In this document: piece after piece, positions 26,476-54,607 of the stretch
Position numbering within the stretch: position 1 is the stretch's first letter
Layout of the letters: each line of letters begins with the position of its first letter
Assembly: GCA_000708835.1 (NCBI GenBank)
Contig: DF237258.1
Location: forward strand, 1 to 64,000
Reading direction: 5' to 3'
Source: Klebsormidium nitens
Taxonomy: Eukaryota; Plantae; Klebsormidiophyceae
DNA length: 64,000 bases
Notes under the pieces: model-generated
What the model saw: the letters and a program-made list of their open reading frames with translations, nothing else
What the model was told of the DNA's origin: nothing
The model's database searches: none
Made by a program: the position numbers and the translations under genes

Positions 26476-26546
26476 AGGTGGTGAGAATGCTTCCCGGGCT
26501 GCGGGAAGCGGGGGGGCACGGGGGGGCGCAGCCCCCCCGTTTCTCA
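26476..26546. repeat. GC-rich hairpin repeat, left copy of an inverted pair flanking the tRNA gene
   Basis: AGGTGGTG...GCGGGGGGGC...GCAGCCCCCCCGT(TT)CTCA matches the reverse complement of 26822-26863. Contains hairpins GCTTCCCG/CGGGAAGC and GGGGGGC/GCCCCCC. Confidence 0.65.
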
Positions 26547-26670: not shown

Positions 26671-26769
26671 TGCACCGGCCGGGAATCGAACCCGGGTCTG
26701 TACCGAGCTCGCTTGCGTCGTGGTGACGCTAGTTGGCAGGGTACTATTCTACCACTAGACCACCGGTGC
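26671..26769 (-). tRNA. tRNA-Gly(GCC) with a 28-nt intron (26706-26733) at the canonical 37/38 position
   Basis: Minus strand reads GCACCGGTGGTCTAGTGGTAGAATAGTACCCTGCCA[ACTAGCGTCACCACGACGCAAGCGAGCT]CGGTACAGACCCGGGTTCGATTCCCGGCCGGTGCA. Removing the bracket gives a 71-nt cloverleaf with intact acceptor stem, anticodon stem GTACC/GGTAC, and A and B boxes. Confidence 0.94.
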
Positions 26770-26821: not shown

Positions 26822-26863
26822 TGAGACGGGGGGGCTGCCGCCCCCCCGCACCCAGCACCACCT
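26822..26863. repeat. GC-rich hairpin repeat, right copy of the inverted pair
   Basis: TGAGACGGGGGGGCTGCCGCCCCCCCGCACCCAGCACCACCT, an inverted copy of 26476-26546. Confidence 0.65.
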
Positions 26864-26923: not shown

Positions 26924-29900
26924 ATGGAGTCCGTGGGAGTCGGCTACATGACACATTACTTGGGCTATGCTGAATTATCAGCTGCAGAGTGGAATGCACA
27001 GATCGATGCATTTGATGTGGAGGTGAGTTCCATTGAACGTGAGGAACACCAAGTCATACATGCAATGCTGTGTCCCGAGCCACACCTCCTGAGCTCGATC
27101 CCGGTCAAAACGGACCGGCGGAGACTTTTCGGTGGGCTTTCCTGTGGGCATCGCCGTTGTAGCTACAGTCTGGGAAGATTCTTCAATGGGTGCAAGATGT
27201 TGCTTTCACTAGAAACATGATGATGGGTGTATTCAAGATCACATCCCGCATCCACGTGAAGCTCACGACACAACACCACCCCTCCTTGAGTTGTCAATGA
27301 ATACAATCATAGTTGGGTCAATACTGGTCCTTTGGGCTGCCGGTCCTGGTGACTCTTTCTAGAGCAGCGCTTTTCTCTGCGCAGAAGCTGCCCAGGTCTC
27401 TTCTCAGAGAGATCAATGCAAGATAGTGGGCGCCCACAACGTGTAAGTGAAGGGGCTGGCACGGTGGTGGTGGTTGCGATGGTGGTGGTGATCACAATTG
27501 GGCAGGCGCCCACAACTACCCCACCCTTGTTACAAATTCAGGCAGAGCCATGATTCATCTGCCCTGCCCATGCGGGCAGTGGTTGAATGCGGTAGCAGCG
27601 TTCCACCAATGAAATTGCCCCTGCAAATCGAGCATCCAATCTGCCCCCACCTTGCCCCACCCATCACCTTTAGTGATTACTCCAACCGGCCCAAAATTTC
27701 TGCACCCTGCTGCCTTCCAGGGCCTGGCGGAGCAGCTGGAAGAGGCGGGCGCCTCCCACTTTCTCTTCACGCTGGGACAGAACAGCGGGCGCTATGCGGC
27801 CCCCAACGCCACCTACGACCGCATCGTGGGGCGCCAGCCCAGCGTCTTATCCAATCGCGATCTGATGAGCGACTTGTACGAGGCCCTGTCGCGGCGCGGC
27901 ATTGCGCTGCTGGCGTACCTGCCCAGCAAGTGCCCTGAGCAGGACCCCCTAGCGATGGAGAAATTCCGGTGGGAGGAGGATGCGCCCCTGAGGCGCCCCT
28001 TCCAGCAGCTGTGGGAGGCGGTTATCCGAGAGTGGTCGCTCCGGTGAGGGGGGGCGCTTATGGGCAGCCTGATTTGTTGATATTTGTTAGGATGTTGGAG
28101 TTGTCTTCTGAGTACGCATGTGGGCAAAGCTCATGTAGATAAGATCGACAAGCGTGGGTTCATGTGGATTACAGGTGTCCTCTCTTTGCCACCTAGGGCC
28201 CCATGTTGAAAAATCGAGCTGCCAGCTCTTTTGGGTCCTTGTTTTGAGATCAAGGAGCGTTAGGGTATGGAATGAATATCCATCTTAAAGGATATGAGTT
28301 GGCGCTAAAGCCCCTGCCATTGTTCCTGCATTTCTGTCAGTAACTGATCAGCAAGTGTAGTCTAGTAATTGGAAGTCACGCATCAGTTGGGGGAGTCGGA
28401 TGAACGGCTTTGAGTACAACAAGGTCTTCGTAGGCAGGCAGCGTCGACAAACCAAGCATTGCCGAGCAATGGCAGAACGCAGTGCATCCTTCCTTGACAT
28501 TCGACTTTTGAGAAAGGCTAGCAACTGACGATAATCAAAAGGAGTTCCGCCTCTCACTCATTCAAACTTAGGAACCCAGTTCGGTGACGCGAGGCCGGTT
28601 ACTTCGTGTTCTGTGCCTGAACGGGCCAGCTTCTCTCCGCCAGGTGGGGCTCCAAGGTGGTGGGCTGGTTCTTCGACGGCTGCTACAACACCGACATGTA
28701 CTCGTCTCCCGAGCCGCCCAACATGGCCAGCTTTGTCGCGGCCGCGCGGGCGGGGAACCCCAACGTGGTCCTCATGTTCAACAACGGGGCGGGGCCGGGC
28801 CAGTCGCTCAGCAGCTTTGAGGACCTGACGGCCGGGGAGATCTGGCAGCAGGCCAGGGTGAGAAGGCGTCGAGCTCCTCCTAGAGTTCGTTGATAGTCCG
28901 CTGTCATGACAATGAGAGTTCAGTCTGCAATATTAAGTTCAACTGTGGAGTATGGGCGCCGTCAGTTTTTTTGGAAGGTACTGCATCTCGAAACCATTCA
29001 CCTGATCCAAGTGCTTGGTTTTACAGACGGATCCTATATGAGAACCATCTGCTTCGAAAAGCGGATCCTGAATCCAAGCACAGCGTATCTATCATACTCT
29101 AGTTTCGTATGTAAGTTGGGCGGTCCATATGGCCTCAAGCAAAGACTCATTCTGAGCTGCCTGGACGTGAAAATTCACGGACGCAATTTTCTCTGCCCGT
29201 AGGTCCTCCCAGAGTGCTCTACCGACGGGCGGTGTCACAGCCGGTGCGCCATGAGCGGCCGCCCCACGGCCCCCCGCTGGCACCTCAACACGTACCTGGC
29301 GGGCAACTTCGGGGGCTTCGGAGTGCCGGACGCGCCCCGCTTCAGCGACCAATACGTGCAGGTGGGGCGGCCAGAATTGTCACCAAGCTGCTGCTAGAGT
29401 GAATTGTTGCGCACAGTTGACTCATCTCGTTCGCCTCTACTTTACAAAGATGCGAGGTGACTCCCACCTCACTCGAAGCTGAAAACCTGTCGTAATCTTG
29501 ATAGACCGTCTATGTCGGTGCGGACTCTATTTGAAGCTTCCCTCCTCCTACCAGTGCGCTGTGTATCAGTGACTGTCGCCCAGGCTCAGTGCATGTCCGC
29601 AGCCACGGCTGGCTGAAATTCTCTCTCGGCTGCCAGGCATACACGATGCGGGCAATGGAGCGCGGCGGAGCCATCACGTGGGACGTGCCGATCCGATTGC
29701 ACGGCACTGAGAACGGGCACATGAGCCGGGCGCTCATGCCGCAGGTCAGCCACCGCTTTATGTCTCTGGGCTCCGGTAATCTAGACACTGCTGCCAACAC
29801 CCTTTACACTGCCGATTATTTCGTTCGAGCTGCGACTGAAAAGAAGTCGTGCCGATACTAATCGGGATTTCTCAATAGCCGTTGTCTTAATACATGTTTA

Positions 29901-32900
29901 GAATCAAGTTTGGCAGCTGCGAGCCGCTAAAGCCCGTCAAGTTCTTCGCATCAGCTTTTTGGCACATGCCTTTGATTTGCAGTTGCGTCAGCTGAAGAAC
30001 GTGCTCCACCCAGACAGCGACCTCGCTTTCAAGCGGCCCGTGCTGGCGTCCTCCGGCCACGTGTCCGCGTCTTTCGGCAATGACGGGAGGGCCGACACGT
30101 GCTGGACAGCCGCCGCGGATGACGAAGACGCCTTCTGGCAGGTGAGGTCTCCCGGAAACGTCGAGGAGTCATACATACCCGACATTTGACGACTGACATC
30201 TCGAATTATGTGAAGCTTTATCCAAGCCCGGGACACTGGAGACCCGTCGGTTCGCGTCAGCCGATGAGCACCGACCCTAGCAGTCAATCCTTTCGTTGTG
30301 AGTGTACATTAGATCCAAATGGACCCCCTAAAGGACAGGCAAGCATGCGCCATTTGCCCTGCGCTTCGGCACAAGCACAGGTTATTGGGAGGGATCGTCG
30401 AGTGCGTCTTCCTCGTAATCATTCTGCCGCACTATCTACTTGAGTCCACCTTTCCGTGTTGGCGGAGCCATTGTTGCTACAGCACGTTGTCTTCGTCTAT
30501 CGAGTGTTCACCAAGAGCTTTTCAATAGACCGTGCCTTCCTTCTGGGAGCCTCAAAGCAGCTTCTCCGCTGGTCAGATCTTCGCTGATCTGGTGATTCGC
30601 CGCAGGTCGACCTGGGCATGCCGTACTTCATTACGTCTGTCGACGTCACCCTCCCTCCCGGCAGCCCTCGCAGCGGCTTCGAGGTGTGGGGATCCCCCGA
30701 CCCCGAGAGCCGCACCTTCACAATCCTCGGCCGCCAACCCGACGACCAGCCACTGCCCGGGGACACCTTCCCGGTCGCTCACCCTCCCGGCAATCCTTGG
30801 GGGCCGTTCCGCTACCTGCGCTTGGTTAAGAGCGGCCGGCAACCGGGGTCGCTTGGCGTGAGTGCTTTTAAAGTGAGGGGCCGGTGGGTTCCCCCGGTCA
30901 ACCTGGCGGTTGGGAAGCCGGCGGTGGCGTCCTCGGGGCAGTCTAGCGTGAGCCTGGGGAATGACGGCCACCGGGAAACGGCGTGGAGCTCCGATGCGGG
31001 GGACGGCAGCCCCTGGTGGCAGGTGGACCTGGGGCAGCCAGTCGAGGTGAGGTTAATCTCCGATTTCATCAAGGGTAAACGCTATGAGGGGTGACAGCAG
31101 CACGTAAAGCAGAAACCAGTGGTCTACACGCTCCGCACCCGTACCCACCCCAACCTCCAAGCCAATCCCATCCGTCCCAATTACCCTTCTTAGCCCTTAC
31201 CTTTCACAAACTATATCGAAGTGAGGTGAGGGACCGACGGTTCGCGAAGCATCACTCGCTCTGATTGCTCAATGTGGGCGATAAAAGTTGGTAAAAACGA
31301 GCCGTTGCAAGCATGCCACTCGATCGACTTGTGCAAATGTCGCAGAAATTCGATTCTCGAGAAGGAGCGGGCGGGCTGGTCTGCGAGCTGGTATGCCTGA
31401 CGATCCGTTCACCTCCTCGTGGACCACAAATGTGGTCCCTGGCCCGATTTTTCGTCCAACACGCACAAATATTGCTGATTCTGGCTGAAGAATTCTGCTC
31501 TTGGAACCATAGTCTGGGTCAGCAGCGAGGGCCTTTCTGCTGCGGCTGACCCTGCCGTTGCGCCGGTACCTGCAGATCTCCATATTGGAGTTTCTGCCCC
31601 CACTTGGCTCCCAAGACGAGCGCTTCCGGCGTGCCTTCGAGTTCCGGGCGTCCAACTCCGCGGACGGAACGGACGCAGTGGTGCTGGGCAGCCAGCCCGC
31701 GGACATGGTGTGTCCCCCGGACACGCTCTGGTCGTGCGGGCCCAGGGACGACAACGGCTACCGATACGTGCGCGTTGCAAAGACGGACGGCCAGCCGTTC
31801 GCGTTCCAGGAGGTGAAAGCAAACTCTCTTTGAGATTACACTTCGTCAGATCCTTGCTTTCTGAGGAAACGACCGATCAGCAGGAAGGAGGTACCTGTTG
31901 AAGGATGTTTCTTGCTTCCAATTGAGCTTTGCCTCTAGCGCAGCTCTGCTCGCAGCGTGCACACGAATCTCCCAGCCTGCTGCTGTAGCCGTGGTCGGGA
32001 AGCCGGCAGTGGCCCTTCGAGGAACCTACCTTTCATTCCTTGACTGATTGCTCCCCTCTCTCGCACTCATGATCGCACCGCATCTGGACGCCCTGCCGCA
32101 CTCTCAGTCTCAAAACAGTGACCAATGTACCGTTTATTGCTTGCATTGGGATTGGGGGGCACAAAGTGGAAAAACAAGACGCAAAATGAGAACGCAACAG
32201 CTTCTACTTTATGTCAGAATTGCCGCCATCTTCCTCTTCCTATTCTGAGAACAGTATCACTGGAGACTGTTACGCAGTCATTCTCTTTCACGCCCTGCGG
32301 TCGCCAAGCGCTCATCGCTCCTTCGTTCCTTCTCCCCAGCTGCGCGTGTACGGCTCCCCCGTGTCCTCGTACCGGAACGCGGTCCCCGGTCGTCCCGTGA
32401 GCGCGTCTTCCGTCTGGTCCGACGCTCTGAACGCGGACCAAGCGGCGGACGAGCTGCTGAACCACATGTGGAGCACGGCCGAAACGGACCCGCAACCATT
32501 TTGGCAGCTAGACCTGGGGGCGGCCCGCCGAGTGACGGCGGTGGAACTGGTGGCGCGCCAGGACGACTGCGACCAGCCGGACTGCAGGAGGTGCGAAATT
32601 TCAACGACGCTTTAATAGGCGATAAGCCATTCGTCTGATTAAGATCAAAGTTTACGTGCTCCGCACAGCCACCCTAAAACCCCATCTAACCCACCGTCCC
32701 GGCACCATTTTCTAATGTACACTACATTGGTGCGTACCACAGGAGCAAGAGTTGCGCTTTGCGAGGAGTCCGAGCGTTGGGAAGGTAACATCGTGTGCCG
32801 GCTAAAGTAATGATATTCGACGTTGGGCAGTGCGAGTCTAGACAAAGCCGAGATCTTATGGACCCTTTCTTGTACTTGGCATCAGAGCTGACGTCCCTGA

Positions 32901-35176
32901 GGGGTTGAGTTGGCAGTTTGAGGGGCTCTCACACCTCTCCATTGTCCAGAGCAAGGAAGGACGCTGGTGACGGATTGGCAACAACCTGGGTTCTGAAAGG
33001 ATTGTGTGACTGATGGAGTTACATGCAGCCGGCAGTAGTACCTTCCAACAACTTTTTCTTTTGCCAGGAATGCTATTGATCACACAAAGTGCTACACTAG
33101 TCAATGACACTTAGTGACACTTCTCCCTTCGCACTTGCAGAGACTTCGAGTTCCGCGGCTCTGACCAAGAAGACGGGTCCGCGTATACGGTCCTGGCCAG
33201 GCAGGGTGGCGAACCATTTCCACACAAGGTAAGAGTAGCATCGCTTCAGCATTCTGGCGGTCGTGTCTCACTGCTGACGCTTGCTTTGCCAGCTGCCTAG
33301 AACGTTCTGTACTTCCGTCAGAGCATCACTCTAGCTTGGAAACTTTCATTGGCGTCGTTTGCAATCGTCTCTATCTGGCCTTTTGTATGCTTACACGTCA
33401 GCGGCCGTAATGAGCAAGGTCGAAGCTTTGCTTTAGCTGACTCCACAACCTGTCTTCCAATCGCCATTTCACCTCAGTGTTTCAGCCCTGCCGTTGCTTC
33501 TTTCAACGTAGCCCGCTCGCAAGTTTTCCATCCTCGTTCAATCACCTCTTCATTGCCGCCTTTTCAGGGCACATGGGCCGCTCCGGTCTCTTGCATGCTT
33601 CTGTTCCGCTACATCCGCGTGGCCAAGGTGCACGGGAATTACTTCAACGCGTGCACCGTCCGAGTCATCACCGGCCCCCCCGCCAGCCCGGATCTGGCTC
33701 TCGGGAAGCCCGCCGTTGCATCGTCGCACTTTGATGAGTACACGGCAGCTGCCAATGGCAACGACGGAGACCTGGGCTCTATCTGGGCCTCTAACGCGGG
33801 AGACCCAGCACCGTGGTGGCAGGTGAGGCCGCTGGGTGCCTGAGAACCGGGATGGAAAGAAGGAGAGCGGGGCAAGCTGCTGCTACAAGCCGAATGTGCG
33901 ACTGAATAAGACGCCTGGTGGGCCGTTTGTTCACTGTTGTTGGCCCTCATTTGCGGTCTTTCATGACTGGAGTAGCGACGAGAAGCAGAAATAAGAAGTG
34001 CCCCGCCGCCCTGACAAATGGATGGACACCATGCTACCCAGGCAGAGCCAGTTTCAACGCTTGAAAACACAAAGCACATGTTTTGCGAACTGGCAGTCGG
34101 AACATTGACATGCAAGAGAGATGGAACGGTTAGAGAGAAAATCAAGAGTGATTAGGAAGAAAAGGGCCGAGAGAGGCAGCTCAGTAAAGGCACAATGGTT
34201 CAATGGTTTTTTCTTGCTCCCAGGTCGACCTCGGCCGTACGTGCCACGTCACCTCTGTGTCCCTCACCCCCCGGCAAGACGGCGACCAGGACTTCACCCG
34301 GCGCAACTTCGTGGTCGCCGGACTGGCCTCCCCCGACGACCCCAATCCCACCACTCTCGCCGAAGTCGGCGAGGATCCCTTTCCGTCCCTACACACGTGG
34401 AACGCCCCGGTGGTAAACCCCGGGCGGTTCCGCTACCTCAGAGTTTCCAAAACTGACGGCTCGCACTTTAACTTCGCGGCTTTTAGTGCACTTGGAACGG
34501 CAGGCCCGCCGGAAAACTTGGCCTTCGGGGCGCGCGCGAGCGCTTCGTCTGAGTTTAGTGACGGCACCCCTGCGTCAGCCGCGCTGGACGGGAGCGTTGC
34601 CACCCTTTGGGCGTCCGCTGCAGAGGACCCCGCGGGGCCGTGGTGGCAGGTACGTCAGCGGGTGCTCACGCTTACGTCATGCTTATGTTGGATGCGCGGG
34701 GAGGAACGAAGCACAATACTCTCAGTCTTAGGGACCTTCGTCTTGCTCTTCTCAATGTTTTCACCCTGTCCCGTCACCAGAGCAAGAAAACAGCCATAGT
34801 GTCGGGATCGAGTATGCAACCCCAACAGATCGCAAAAAGTGGCATTGTCCGAAGCTCAATTCCGTGACGAGCAGACTATTGTCCCCCGCAGGTGGACCTG
34901 GGCGGGCCGTGCCACGTAACGCGCATCGAGCTGACTGCGCGCCAGGATGAGGGCCAGGATCTAGCGCGCACCAACTTCGAAGTGCGCGGCTCCGATGTTG
35001 CAGACAACAGCGACTTCGCCGTGCTTGGTGGGCTAACGGGGCCGCCGTTTGAGGACAAGGGCACGTGGCAAAGCGTACTGGCGGACGGAACAAAGTGCCG
35101 GTACTTGAGAGTTGTCAAGTTGGACGGTGCGCACTTCAACTTTGTCCAGTTTCGAGCGTTTGGGTATAAGTTATGA
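26924..35176 (+). CDS. Bacterial-type GH29-like (putative alpha-L-fucosidase-like) glycoside hydrolase fused to five F5/8-type C (CBM32/CBM47-like) domains; 13 exons, about 1,010 aa
   Basis: All 12 introns are GT-AG and phase-consistent with no internal stops. Catalytic part: GYMTHYL...FDVEGLAEQLEEAGASHFLFTLGQNSGRYAAPNATYD...RDLMSDLYEAL...WEAVIREWSLRWGSKVVGWFFDGCY...AAARAGNP...EDLTAGE...GGAITWDVP. Five repeats of N/DLAxGKPAxASS...NDG...W...WWQVDLG...FRY(L/I/V)R(V/L)xK. Confidence 0.82.
31130..31178 (+). repeat. Dispersed C-rich repeat (other copies 32658-32700 and 63488-63536)
   Basis: GCTCCGCACCCGTACCCACCCCAACCTCCAAGCCAATCCCATCCGTCCC is 41/49 identical to 63488-63536. A shorter related copy lies in another intron at 32658. 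Confidence 0.7.
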
Positions 35177-35703: not shown

Positions 35704-36423
35704 TTGTCGTTATGCACATCTTCTTGCAGATGCATGATTGAGCAGCTGCAGCGAGTAGCTCTCAGTGCAATCACTAAAGCGTGACATGCCAGCCTCAACG
35801 TGGGGTGACTGATGGACAGATTGACTGATTATGAATAATGGATGACGCAAATCTGTACGATCGTCTACACACTGCGAGCTGGCGTTCAGTGATGCAAGCT
35901 GACCTCGCAGACTACCGTTCGTCAGGCCTGGGCCTTGGAGAAGAACGTGGCTACACCGCTGCAGCCTGAATCTGCTATACCACAAACCCGCGAGTGGCAG
36001 ATTGCATGCTGCCCGTCATGTCGCTGGACGGCCGCGGCAGAGATCACGCACAAGTCGTAAGGTTGCGCGTCGACCGAAAACCTACTTGGCTTCCAGTGTT
36101 AGCTTTGTTGTACCGACAGGTAGAAGGTACGGTACCCTTCCAGCCATATTACATCTCTGGTATGTACCTTGGCATACCACGTGGATCTGAAAAGCCATCC
36201 GATTGGCTGAGTAATCTGGAAAGCTTTTTGAGGCTTTTCGTTCGACGCGCACCCTAAGACTCAGGTCGCTGAAGCTTGGGGGCTATCAAGCCGACTGCTC
36301 CAGCAAGGCTCCACTGGGACGAGGGCATGCGCGCGCTTTGGCTACGTCGAGACCATAAAGCACGAGACCCGATCGGTCTTGAAAATCGCTCAAAGTGGGG
36401 TTACTTTAGTTGTGTTGCGCACG

Positions 36424-38553
36424 ATGGCGCTCGCTGATCCCTCTCCTGCTGCGGCGGCGCGCGCGCTGTCCGGCTTGCCCCTGGACGTGCTCCGCCTCAT
36501 TGTGGCCAAGCTGGACCTGCAGGACCGCCTACGCCTAGAGGCGCTGGACAGGAGTCACCGGGAGATCATGAGGGAGCCGGAGCTGTGGCAGGATATCAGG
36601 CTGGGAGGTGGGAGGGCATTGGAGATTAAAGAGGAGCAGCTTCTCATTCTCATTTCCAGAATCGATCACCGCATGCAGGCTGCGTCTCACATAGCCGGCA
36701 TGACAGCTGCCCTTCAAGACATTACGCAGAGTTACCTGGGGCATGATCCGCTGCGCAACCCGAAACTGGACTCCCGACTGAGCACTCCTGGAGCAACCTT
36801 AGGCTCACCCTTCTCCTTCATTGAAATAAGAGTGTTATACCAAGCAGTGCCCGAGACCTGGGGCCCTCTCAGGCTCATCGCAGAAACGTGCACAGTCTGG
36901 GTGGTCGAGCAAGTCAACCGGATTCCGAAAGCCGCTCGGAAGCTCTTTTCGGCCTGCCAGAAGATCGTCAGGGATCCTGCTGCGATCGTAGGGACCCTGA
37001 AGGCAAAATTGACCGGTCAGGTGAAGCTTGAGGGCAAACCGTCAGCGAAGAAGGCAGTGTCTCTCAACGTCACAGGGGGCACCAAGTTGTCTCCAGCCTT
37101 TCTCGCAGCGTGCACCATTGCCCTCTCGGCGGCAGGGTACCACGTGGACCTCACGATGGACGGAGAAAGCGACCCTGGCTTTCTGGTCAACCACCCTGTG
37201 CATGACGTCATCCGGAGCCTGGCCCTCGACTGCTCGCTGCACGTAAACCTGCTAGTGTCCGGAAAATTTCCTTGGACGGCGGACTGTCTCGAGGGCTTCG
37301 GTCAAGGCGGGCAGTTGCAAGCAGCGGTGCAGCCCGAAACGGTGGAGGCGAAAGTGGAGCGCGTGGCTGCCTCGATAGCGCCCCATTACAAAGGCTCAAG
37401 CGCGGCATGCCAAAACTTCCTTGACAAAGTCTGGTCGCTGGTGGAATTCAGAGCTGCAGTCGCGGGAAAATCAGGCTCGGCCAAAGGCGCGACAGCCAAA
37501 GTCGTAAGCGAGACCGTCGTTTTGGAGCATCTCGTCGAAGTGGAGCCCCTTCTCCTCGAAGCACTGCGCAGGTGCTCGTCGCCGGAAAAGCTCCAGCTGG
37601 CGTTCCGGAACTGCCTGCTTCCGGCCAACGGATTCCGCTCGCTCTTTGCGGTACTCGGGGAGCGCGGAACCGGCCGCGTGGCCCTTCAGCAGCACTCTCC
37701 GTTTGAGAATCCTCAGGTGGCAGCGCTCCTTTTAGCGTGCGCAGAGCTGCAAAGCAGCACGGGGCTCAAGGTTCTCGAGCTCGACCTTCCGCTCTCTCCG
37801 GCGGACCTCGATTCCGTCGCCCTGTTCCTGGACCGGAACCTGAACGGCGCCGAGGTTGTCATCCACTTGCGGCCGGCCTTCTACTTCAAAAGCGGCCAGC
37901 TATCGCAGCGCTTCTTCTCGCAGCTCAGGGGGCTGTGCTTGTCAGAGCGGAGTGCCCGGCTGAGGATTGTGCGCTACCGGGGAGGGGCTCCGCTTTCGAA
38001 AGGGAGAGCCGCTGAAGACCCAGGAAGCCTCGACGCCTTCCTTTCGCCAGTCCAGCAGGAAATACGGTCCAAGCTCCGGATCCGCAAAATCGTCGGCTTC
38101 GTGGACCGTTCGATCTCCTTCTTACTCGTCGGAGATTTGCTCGTCGTCTTGGCTACTCTCGTGGACTGGCTCCTCGGTTTAGGCTGGCTTAGCTTTATGA
38201 CAAAACGGGCCAAGGTGATGGCCTACCAGCTGGCCATGGCCATGACCTTCTTGTGGCCGTCGATACAAGCGTCGCTGCTGGGGAGGTTGGATCTGACGGG
38301 CACGGTTTACGGGCTTTGCGTCAGCGGCTTCCTGCCCATGACGTGGATCGACTTGGCCATCAGGTCCTTGCCCGCGTACCTGGGCGCTTGTCTCGTGTGG
38401 ACGATCGCGAGGTGCCTGCTCAAGGCTGCTGCGGGGTGTTTCCGCCACTTCGCTGCCAAGGTGAGGGAACCACAAGAACGTCCGTTCTGTTCTAGGCAGC
38501 TGGCCCGTTCCTTTACTGAGTATTGGGTGCTTGTCTTTGACGGATGGGGTTGA
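36424..38553 (+). CDS. Intronless F-box protein with degenerate LRR-like middle and about 4 C-terminal transmembrane helices (709 aa)
   Basis: Uninterrupted ORF from ATG 36424. F-box motif LSGLPLDVLRLIVAKLDLQDRLRLEALDRSHREIM...W. Hydrophobic segments FLLVGDLLVVLATLVDWLLGLGWLSF, VMAYQLAMAMTFLWPSI, VYGLCVSGFLPMTWIDLAI, AYLGACLVWTIARCLL. A paralogue lies at 52467-54607. Confidence 0.82.
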   Translation: MALADPSPAAAARALSGLPLDVLRLIVAKLDLQDRLRLEALDRSHREIMREPELWQDIRLGGGRALEIKEEQLLILISRIDHRMQAASHIAGMTAALQDITQSYLGHDPLRNPKLDSRLSTPGATLGSPFSFIEIRVLYQAVPETWGPLRLIAETCTVWVVEQVNRIPKAARKLFSACQKIVRDPAAIVGTLKAKLTGQVKLEGKPSAKKAVSLNVTGGTKLSPAFLAACTIALSAAGYHVDLTMDGESDPGFLVNHPVHDVIRSLALDCSLHVNLLVSGKFPWTADCLEGFGQGGQLQAAVQPETVEAKVERVAASIAPHYKGSSAACQNFLDKVWSLVEFRAAVAGKSGSAKGATAKVVSETVVLEHLVEVEPLLLEALRRCSSPEKLQLAFRNCLLPANGFRSLFAVLGERGTGRVALQQHSPFENPQVAALLLACAELQSSTGLKVLELDLPLSPADLDSVALFLDRNLNGAEVVIHLRPAFYFKSGQLSQRFFSQLRGLCLSERSARLRIVRYRGGAPLSKGRAAEDPGSLDAFLSPVQQEIRSKLRIRKIVGFVDRSISFLLVGDLLVVLATLVDWLLGLGWLSFMTKRAKVMAYQLAMAMTFLWPSIQASLLGRLDLTGTVYGLCVSGFLPMTWIDLAIRSLPAYLGACLVWTIARCLLKAAAGCFRHFAAKVREPQERPFCSRQLARSFTEYWVLVFDGWG

Positions 38554-52466: not shown

Positions 52467-54607
52467 TCAGGCTAGAAGCGGTTCGTCCCTGGGCCCCCTT
52501 AATCTGGCCGCTACCAGACGGCACCCCGCCGCAGCGGCCTTGCCCACCTGCCTCACGACCGTCCACACGAGACACGCGCCAAGGTACGCGAAGAAGGCAC
52601 CCAGTGCTAGGACTGCCCACGTTTTCACAAAGCCGCAGACGAACAGGCCAGCAAAGATACCCATTGGATCCGGCCTGCCTTGCAGCGTGGCCTCAAGCGG
52701 GGGCCACACGAAGATCCCTGCCCAAAACAGCTGGATAGTCATCCACTTGGCGTCGGTGGACATGAAGGCGAACACTCCCCAGACAAACAGGTAGTCGAGC
52801 AGCACGGCCAGGCAGAGGATGAGGTCCGCGAGCTGGAAAAAAGCAACTGCCCTATCCAACTCCTGGAGAGCTCTTTGGAACCGATACGCGGACTGAACTT
52901 CCTCTTCCACAAGGGCCAGGAAGGCGTCGTCAAAAGCTTCGTCTCTTTCCGTTCCGCCCTCTGCCCCTTCCGTTTGCAGCGGAGCCCCTCCGCGGTACCG
53001 CATGCGCACGAGCCTCACCCGGGCGCCCCGCTCCGAAGCGCACAGCTCTTTGAGTTTGGAGAGAACCTGCTGAAATCCGCCCGCGCTTTTGGAGTAAAAG
53101 GCTGGCCGCAAGTGGATTGCGACCTCCGAGACATGTTCGTTCCGGTCTAAGAACAGCGCAACGGACTCGAGGTCCGTCACAGACAGCGGAAAGTCGAGCT
53201 CTAGAGTGTGAAGGCCCGTGCTCCTCTGCAGCTCTGCGCAACCCAAAATGGCCCGCGCCATGTCCGGCTTCTCGAACGGAAAGTGCTGTTCGAAGACCAC
53301 GCAGCCGATACCGCAATCCCCGATCAAACCGCAGAGGAAGCGGAATCGATCCCCCTTCAGCAGGCAGTTCCGGAAGACCAAGCGGAGCTTGTCGGGCGAC
53401 TCTTGGAGATATTGCCGCAGCTCTTCGAGGAGTGGGGGCTTGGCTTCTTCTAGAAGCTCGAAGACTACAGTCTCACTGACGACTTTGGCCGTTGCACCTC
53501 TCATGCCCGACGCAGACCTGCCTGAGATCGCTTCCACCTTTTCTCTGAGCTCGACTAGCGAAAAGATTTTGTCGACGAACATTTGGTAGGCAGCTTTTGA
53601 ACCCTCAAACTCAGGCGCCGTGGAAGCAGCCACACGCTCCAGCTTGGATTCAATCGCTTCGTATTCAGGGGCTGCGTCTTGGCCTTGCGCATAAGAGTTG
53701 AAGCGGCTCAGGCATTCCGGCCTCCAGGGATGGACTCCGGTCACTAACAGGTTCACGTGCAGCGAGCAGTCGAGGGCCAGGCTGCGGATGACGTCAAGCA
53801 CAGGGTGGTTGGAGACAAAGCCAGGGTCGCTTTCTCCGTCCATCTTTAGGTCCACGTGATACCCTCAGGCCGCTGAAAGAGCGATGATGCAGGCTGCCAG
53901 GAAGTTTGGGTACAAGTTCACTGCTCCAGAGACGTCAAGGCAGACTGCCCGCTTTGATGACCCCTTGCCTGCAGGCTGCTTTACGCCTCGGAGGCGGGCC
54001 AGCACCTTCCTTGCGAAAGCAGCAGGACTGTGGGCCAGCTTTGGGCAGGCCAGAAGGAGATTCCATGCTGCTGTAGCTATTCTCGGGATGCGGTTGTATT
54101 GCTCAAAGAACCAGAGGGAGCACGTCTCCTCAGCAAACTTAAGTCGGCCCCACTCCTCAGGCACTGCCGTGTAATGGACCCTAAGCGGCACTATCAGGCC
54201 GAGATTGAGAAAGGTCTTGGCAAATGAACCTGAAGCTCGCGACTCTGCCCTTCCGATCTCGCTGGAATATTCCACTTTGTGTTCCAAATAGCTTGTGGTG
54301 ACGTCAGCCAGGGTCGCGGCCATGCGTCTGATCTGCGGTGCAGCTGCCTGCATGCCTGGGTCAATCCGGCCCAGCAGACACAAGATCTGCTCTTCCGTGC
54401 ATTCAAAAACATCATGTCACCGAGCTCGATGTCCCGCCACAGCTCCGGCACCCTCAGCGTGTCCCGATGGGCTTTGTTCAACAGCTCCAGCGGCAACCGG
54501 TCCTTGAGATCAACTTTCTGCAGTATGATGCGGAGGACGTCAAGGGGGAGGGCACAGAACGCCCCTGCTTCGCCTGCACGAGTTGATTGGGCGTGACCTT
54601 GCGCCAT
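52467..54607 (-). pseudogene. Disrupted paralogue of the F-box/4TM gene
   Basis: Aligns end to end with 36424-38553 (F-box LPLDVLRIILQKVDLKDRL; GESDPGFVSNHPV.DVIRSLALDCSLHVNLLV; TM tail). It has a 1-nt frameshift near 54405 and an extra in-frame TGA at 53865-53867. Confidence 0.82.

Follow-up and report, generated by a model that had tools for sequence, protein, structure and literature searches.

We analyzed a 64,000-nucleotide stretch of the Klebsormidium nitens genome (positions 1 to 64,000 of contig DF237258.1, assembly GCA_000708835.1; hereafter the window), which contains at 26924-35176 on the + strand a gene for a glycosidase barrel followed by five lectin modules. The short open frames on that strand read together as a single gene of 13 exons and 12 introns, all of them GT-AG, as determined by reading the DNA and by a script check. 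The coding sequence of 3,045 nucleotides (1,014 codons plus TGA at 35174-35176) begins with the ATG at 26924, which bears out the intact gene of about 1,010 residues with 12 spliceosomal introns described in the initial annotation. Introns measure 238-698 nucleotides at 51% G+C, exons have 66% G+C, and there is no second gene copy within the window. Three contigs from other samples represent two distinct relatives of the alga (L001, from a Logan assembly, and L002/L003, from two JGI metagenomes), and in them all 13 exons are open and full-length. As developed below, we read the locus, with a probability of about 0.65, as a functional nuclear gene that joins a barrel of bacterial origin from the clan of glycoside hydrolase families 29 and 107 (GH29/GH107) to five lectin modules and encodes a retaining alpha-L-fucosidase-like enzyme.

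Gene structure, start codon and genomic context

The first ~310 residues form a (beta/alpha)8 glycosidase domain; in an alignment to twelve bacterial members of the family, exons 1-3 and 5, together with most of exon 4, are collinear with this one domain. Exon 1 (26924-27022, 33 codons) supplies the start codon, the first barrel strand and a WN..FDVE motif, and exon 2 (27721-28043, 107 codons plus 2 nucleotides) contains TLGQNSG, NRDL, YLPS and REWSL. Exon 3 (28644-28857) carries GWFFDG, AGNP and EDLTAGE, and with them the codons of the putative nucleophile Asp (28675-28677, residue ~152 by exon arithmetic) and the putative acid/base Glu (28837-28839, residue ~206). The three motifs singled out initially (GWFFDG, the TAGE Glu and TLGQNSG) are thus located in exons 3, 3 and 2, respectively. 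Exon 4 (29203-29361) is a divergent barrel segment with a Cys-rich insertion of ~16 residues (PECSTDGRCHSRC, 29203-29261) inside the barrel, which is kept with changes in L001 and L002 and absent from bacterial homologues. The last conserved barrel strand, GGAITWDVP, lies in exon 5 (29637-29744). Exon 6 (29983-30141) encodes the end of the last barrel helix and then the N-terminal part of the first lectin module. The gene was queried exon by exon, and since single catalytic exons are too short for matches to domain models, full-length bacterial homologues were used as proxies for the spliced protein. The first two junctions are confirmed by their gapless collinearity with intronless bacterial homologues: FDVE|GLAEQL joins exons 1 and 2, and REWSL-R-WGSKV joins exons 2 and 3, with the Arg codon split by intron 2.

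The N-terminal residues, MESVGVGYMTHYLG, already belong to the first barrel strand and include no hydrophobic leader; on this ground the absence of a signal peptide noted initially holds. Exon 1 and its ATG are kept in L001 and L002. Comparison with the relatives by tblastx and DNA alignment revealed no conserved coding sequence, exon or shared acceptor upstream of the ATG, and the candidate acceptors found there differ in phase among the relatives. Conservation of the start codon but not of the sequence immediately before it makes the ATG at 26924 the probable start, and the missing signal peptide appears to be a conserved trait; an upstream signal-peptide exon is unlikely on this comparison, a short divergent one being the form still possible. 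The protein may be cytosolic. The extracellular role first suggested for it, in wall remodelling or on biofilm glycans, was an overreach, since a protein that is consistently leaderless in the relatives too is unlikely to be simply secreted.

Pooled Nei-Gojobori estimates reveal constraint on every exon, with synonymous divergence (dS) of 0.40 and a nonsynonymous-to-synonymous ratio (dN/dS) of 0.144 for L001, and dS of 1.23 and dN/dS of 0.148 for L002. Constraint is equally strong on catalytic and lectin exons, with proportions of nonsynonymous differences (pN) of 0.04-0.10. The neighboring genes are eukaryotic and include the flavodoxin domain of a P450-reductase-like gene, an aspartate kinase and a Deg-type protease. 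With its introns, host neighbors and conservation in relatives, the gene is integrated in the manner of a native one, and the comparisons support a native, intron-bearing nuclear gene under purifying selection, in agreement with its initial description as domesticated. The bacterial type of the sequence, together with a G+C content at third codon positions (GC3) of 0.81, above the 0.64-0.72 of adjoining genes, might instead point to a bacterial contaminant or an assembly artefact. That explanation has a negligible probability: the gene has twelve GT-AG introns and eukaryotic neighbors, its exon-intron structure recurs in independent assemblies, and we regard the explanation as refuted by the intron structure and synteny.

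Several other features surround the gene. A tRNA gene with an intron lies at 26671-26769 on the - strand, 155 bp upstream of the ATG (Rfam RF00005, 51.3 bits, E = 4.7e-10); it has an insertion of ~30 nucleotides after the anticodon and reads by eye as Gly-GCC. ARAGORN reported no tRNA in the window, this one included. G/C-rich runs resembling GGGGGCTGCCGCCCCCCC flank the tRNA gene at 26480-26540 and 26826-26850, in the putative promoter, and may be copies of a short repeat. Two large intron-free frames, at 36379-38553 (+) and 52467-53855 (-), are 53% identical over 459 residues (E = 7e-152), have hydrophobic C-terminal segments and no Pfam match, and look like a lineage-specific paralogous pair flanking the region.

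The catalytic barrel and its bacterial relatives

An exhaustive HMMER search with the exon 2 frame retrieved 654 cluster representatives at E ≤ 1e-3 and 269 at E ≤ 1e-10. The two top matches, at 86% and 82% identity, are exon-sized fragments on eukaryotic contigs, and every other match has at most 61% identity. Those other matches that were examined in full look bacterial: they run uninterrupted across the algal exon 1/2 junction, and several have bacterial leader peptides. In a set of 80 bacterial loci, exons 1-3 and 5 match 24-80 loci at 48-65% identity, and exon 4 gave no tblastn match. A scan of metagenomes with exon 2 added two loci only, at 53-54% identity. Full-length bacterial members that are 50-60% identical to the window exons score 22.6-75.9 bits against the GH29 model PF01120 (Alpha_L_fucos; cut-off 25.2), and bacterial relatives also carry precomputed matches to PF26376, named "Mef1" in the Atlas output; Mef1 is listed as a GH107 endo-fucoidanase (PMC11943901). 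At least 580 GTDB species genomes encode a member of the family, the best-represented phyla being Planctomycetota, Hydrogenedentota, Acidobacteriota and Verrucomicrobiota.

The hallmarks of this bacterial clade are T-x-GQNSG, GW-x-x-DG and EDYTAGE, and the window protein retains 50 of the 57 positions that are near-invariant (at least 90% conserved) in the bacterial set. Both the window and the whole clade read T-x-G-Q-N-S-G where classical GH29 enzymes have T-x-K-H-H-D-G, the His-His fucose-binding motif after beta-strand 2; because it marks the entire clade, TLGQNSG is no algal peculiarity. Judged from these alignments, the barrel is a member of a large bacterial clade within the GH29/GH107 fucosidase superfamily, in line with the bacterial, GH29-like type first proposed.

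To place this clade among solved enzymes, we searched PDB sequences with a family profile (A3) built from 20 bacterial members. The best match is 9pnj, "alpha-L-fucosidase" (FucWf4), at E = 1.4e-25, followed by the GH107 enzyme MfFcnA (6dns, 6dlh, 6dms) at 1.5-1.9e-11, a fucosidase of Pontiella sulfatireligans (8z63) at 2.2e-11, and classical GH29 enzymes at 1e-8 to 1e-3. The AlphaFold model of a bacterial proxy (P0004, residues 40-370) has a predicted local distance difference test score of 93.2 and a predicted template-modeling score of 0.91. Its best Foldseek matches are 9pnk/9pnj, "GH29-like fucosidase FucWf4", with template-modeling scores of 0.74-0.76, and then the GH29 enzyme AlfB, GH29A and GH107 structures. 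The identity of FucWf4 is taken from the Foldseek titles, a literature text search for the codes 9PNJ, 9PNK and 8Z63 having returned nothing relevant.

In the profile alignment, the Asp of GW-x-x-DG coincides with D226 of MfFcnA and the Glu of TAGE with H294, and the window protein retains both clade residues. In MfFcnA, D226 serves as nucleophile and H294 as acid/base, the latter standing where the GH29 enzyme BiAfcB has Glu217 (PMC11943901). The GWFFDG Asp is near-invariant, present in 19 of 20 clade sequences. Two features expected of GH29 are therefore predicted for the algal barrel, namely an Asp nucleophile at the end of beta-strand 4 in a W-x-D-G type motif and, by alignment alone, a carboxylate acid/base. 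The GH29 His-His motif is replaced by GQNSG, and the His acid/base of GH107 is replaced by Glu.

Changes at near-invariant positions (Y to H, W to F in GWWxDG, Q to R, and a further W to F), the divergent exon 4 with its Cys-rich insertion, and the missing signal peptide would suit a catalytically dead barrel, in which case the protein would serve as a multivalent lectin only. We consider this very improbable, as both putative catalytic residues and the conserved positions counted above are retained and the catalytic exons are constrained to the same degree as the lectin exons.

The genetic context of the bacterial barrels was also inspected. In P0171 the GQNSG-clade barrel is joined to a GH95-like module, and in P0177 and P0187 its partner is DUF5696. 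A GH95-like gene lies directly downstream in two of the five bacterial loci inspected; the other neighbors seen are genes for a GH88 enzyme, for a DUF5696 protein and for an outer-membrane beta-barrel matching a TonB-dependent receptor. This context fits a role in the breakdown of complex fucose- or L-galactose-bearing glycans and leaves the substrate itself unfixed. The recurrence of the bacterial barrel beside, or in one protein with, a GH95-like module (with DUF5703_N) and DUF5696, as at L066 (3979-6480) and L035 (3953-6811) and in the three fusion proteins, suggests an undescribed glycan-degrading gene set.

Lectin modules and origin of the gene

Five F5/8C (CBM32-like) modules of ~135 residues each follow the barrel, as delimited by the recurring pattern G-K-P-A-x-A-S-S ... 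W-W-Q | V-D-L-G, and are 35-55% identical to one another. Because every module is split by introns, lectin models were matched to exon pieces. Exons 7, 9 and 12 reach or exceed threshold for the Pfam model F5_F8_type_C (PF00754) and/or the NedA-like galactose-binding model (PF22633), and exon 11 remains below it. Exon 7 (30606-31046), which completes module 1 and begins module 2, scores 31.9 bits with PF22633 and 27.9 bits with PF00754, and exon 8 (31576-31812) completes module 2. Module 3 is spread over exon 9 (32340-32590; its N-terminal part, PF00754, 34.0 bits), exon 10 (33141-33228; its middle, 29 codons, kept in L001 and L002) and the beginning of exon 11 (33568-33822), which continues into the N-terminal part of module 4 and is assigned by internal repeats (PF00754, 17.8 bits, E = 0.004). 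Exon 12 (34224-34649) completes module 4 and begins module 5 (PF00754, 40.2 bits). Exon 13 (34892-35176), with the remainder of module 5 and the stop codon, shares 45% identity with the beginning of exon 12 (E = 6e-22). The remaining lectin pieces are likewise linked by internal similarity (38-47%, E = 1e-5 to 1e-22).

The count of five modules given initially stands, and their assignment to the RQD type holds in part: modules 2 to 5 have an (R/S)QD motif, which module 1 has lost. Modules 1, 4 and 5 share an intron exactly between WWQ and VDLG, and in modules 2 and 3 its position is shifted. The DNA at this point reads CAG|GT, a good proto-splice site, so the shared position could mean either duplication after intron gain or parallel insertion. 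The nearest PDB domains to exon 12 are the clostridial CBM32 2v72 and the F5/8C module of the Akkermansia protein 8ayr, which is also matched by the A3 profile.

Beyond the close algal relatives, the nearest relatives of the barrel are bacterial, at 55-61% identity. In an exon 2 tree (107 residues), the three eukaryotic sequences form one clade with 99% support in the Shimodaira-Hasegawa-like approximate likelihood-ratio test, placed among bacterial sequences. No other eukaryote appears in the 150 best of the 654 exon 2 representatives, eukaryotic genomes not having been searched directly. Two profile searches of a 5.8-billion-cluster collection, one with a profile weighted toward the algal exons, returned among the best 120 of each only bacterial or unlabelled metagenomic proteins, with one exception (P0313). 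No full-length protein matching the algal gene emerged from these searches, either because the collection lacks it or because it was not scored as a candidate. The exception is a eukaryote-labelled protein of 984 residues from Picozoa sp. COSAG02 (EukProt EP01043) with a leader peptide, two tandem GQNSG-clade barrels, of which the second is split by a long Cys-rich insertion, no discoidin module and no match in the Pfam copy used. It does not group with the algal clade and could be an independent transfer or a contaminant of a single-cell assembly.

Gene gain from bacteria is a well-known kind of event in this algal group. Since no eukaryotic orthologue beyond the close relatives turned up, horizontal acquisition by an ancestor of these relatives is the best reading, and on these comparisons a horizontal origin is well supported. 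The acquisition proposed initially is therefore upheld for the barrel, whose nearest relatives are bacterial, and is not supported for the discoidin modules, which could not be traced to the bacterial relatives. We propose that the barrel most likely entered an ancestor of the algal lineage from bacteria and that the transferred gene then gained its 12 introns, now carrying five tandem F5/8C modules. The enzyme would act by retaining double displacement, with the Asp of GWFFDG as nucleophile and the Glu of TAGE as acid/base, and would cleave, in an exo mode, an alpha-L-fucose-like residue off a glycan that the lectin modules hold in place.

Several observations weigh against this proposal. Scanned singly, the catalytic exons match no Pfam or NCBIfam glycosidase model (for Pfam, none at E ≤ 1), and no assayed member of the GQNSG clade turned up in the databases and literature examined. 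The sugar may not be fucose, because GQNSG replaces the GH29 fucose-binding HH motif. The missing signal peptide, shared by three taxa, is odd for a glycosidase with several lectin modules, and with five of them it is the one truly odd feature of the gene. Searched with tblastn, the 3-kb flanks of the 80 bacterial homologues gave no match to the discoidin exons, and barrel and modules may consequently not have been transferred together. A long stem leads to the algal clade, whose nearest bacterial neighbor differs between the two exon 2 trees, for which reason we name no donor. Absence from other eukaryotes was sampled only, eukaryotic genomes not having been searched directly, and is not proven.

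The long stem without a resolved bacterial sister, the non-exhaustive search of eukaryotic genomes and the single eukaryote-labelled protein from Picozoa would be compatible with an ancient eukaryotic gene of vertical descent lost in most lineages. This history is improbable: the family is spread over many bacterial phyla in the species genomes counted above, the Picozoa protein differs in architecture, lies outside the algal clade and comes from single-cell assemblies in which contamination is possible, and a classical eukaryotic GH29 enzyme such as human FUCA1 (7pls) matches the A3 profile at 7e-5 only. Transfer from bacteria thus remains the history that we prefer, and the algal gene adds a clean, selection-maintained example to the bacterial carbohydrate-active genes of early-diverging streptophyte algae, which are part of how plants acquired cell-wall and environmental glycan chemistry.

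Comparison with characterized glycosidases

The initial annotation put the gene forward as its best candidate for an undescribed system. We do not maintain this: Pfam already gives the bacterial relatives the label alpha-L-fucosidase, and for FucWf4, a distant relative, both an activity assay and a solved structure exist. What is new, as far as the sequences tell, is a eukaryotic member of a horizontally acquired GH29/GH107-clan type of glycosidase; a search of the literature on Klebsormidium with fucosidase or GH29 found nothing on this gene. The gene also highlights a bacterial clade, devoid of the classical fucose-binding motif, that is automatically annotated as alpha-L-fucosidase in at least 580 species genomes; its substrate could reasonably be sought with the algal protein or with a bacterial relative that is easier to handle.

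An enzyme of the same family and origin could differ from an exo-alpha-L-fucosidase in its action, as an endo-acting enzyme on fucans or as one specific for alpha-L-galactose or for sulfated or methylated fucose. GH107 endo-fucoidanases match the family profile at least as well as classical GH29 enzymes do, many bacterial relatives have "Mef1" matches (PF26376), GQNSG stands in place of the HH motif, and GH29 contains an exo-alpha-L-galactosidase (PDB 7lnp; PMC11189522). Against this, the acid/base Glu is that of GH29-B and not the His of GH107, and the closest solved relative, FucWf4, is an exo-fucosidase crystallized with fucose. Such a different action is a real possibility, if an unlikely one, and we continue to favor an alpha-L-fucosidase-like exo activity. 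More doubtful is the larger proposition that the GQNSG clade is a distinct family or subfamily of the GH29/GH107 clan with a new sugar specificity, represented in the alga by an intracellular pentavalent lectin-enzyme with a role new for plants. Were it true, the enzyme might trim cytosolic or nucleocytoplasmic glycoconjugates or attack the glycans of invading microbes.

Among known enzymes, FucWf4 of Wenyingzhuangia fucanilytica (9pnj/9pnk) is closest to the algal barrel, being the best PDB profile match, over the whole barrel, and the best fold match to the bacterial proxy; it shares the barrel motifs W..FDV, RDL, Y..P and AGNP with this clade. A similarity-network study placed it among the GH29 sequences outside any cluster, and it frees terminal alpha-1,3/4-fucose from sulfated fuco-oligosaccharides (PMC11189522). 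In contrast to the algal protein, FucWf4 is bacterial, has an extra N-terminal domain of ~200 residues and no discoidin array, shows AHGTQH in place of the GQNSG of the clade, and lacks a Glu at the TAGE position; identity is ~19%. The GH107 endo-fucoidanases (MfFcnA, 6dlh/6dms/6dns; PF26376) resemble the barrel in their profile match (1.5e-11) and in the alignment of the D226 and H294 positions, whereas the algal barrel has Glu and not His as its predicted acid/base, is much shorter (~310 residues) and gives no sign of endo action. Compared with classical GH29 enzymes (TmFuc of Thermotoga, BiAfcB, human FUCA1 and plant FUC1), it has GQNSG for (K)HHDG, lacks the GH29 C-terminal beta-sandwich and is matched at profile E-values of 1e-8 to 1e-3 only. 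The fold and the nucleophile position after beta-strand 4 are nonetheless the same, the putative acid/base Glu sits where BiAfcB has E217, and the attachment of C-terminal F5/8C modules, common among GH29 enzymes (8ayr, 4zrx, 6tr3), resembles the layout of the algal protein.

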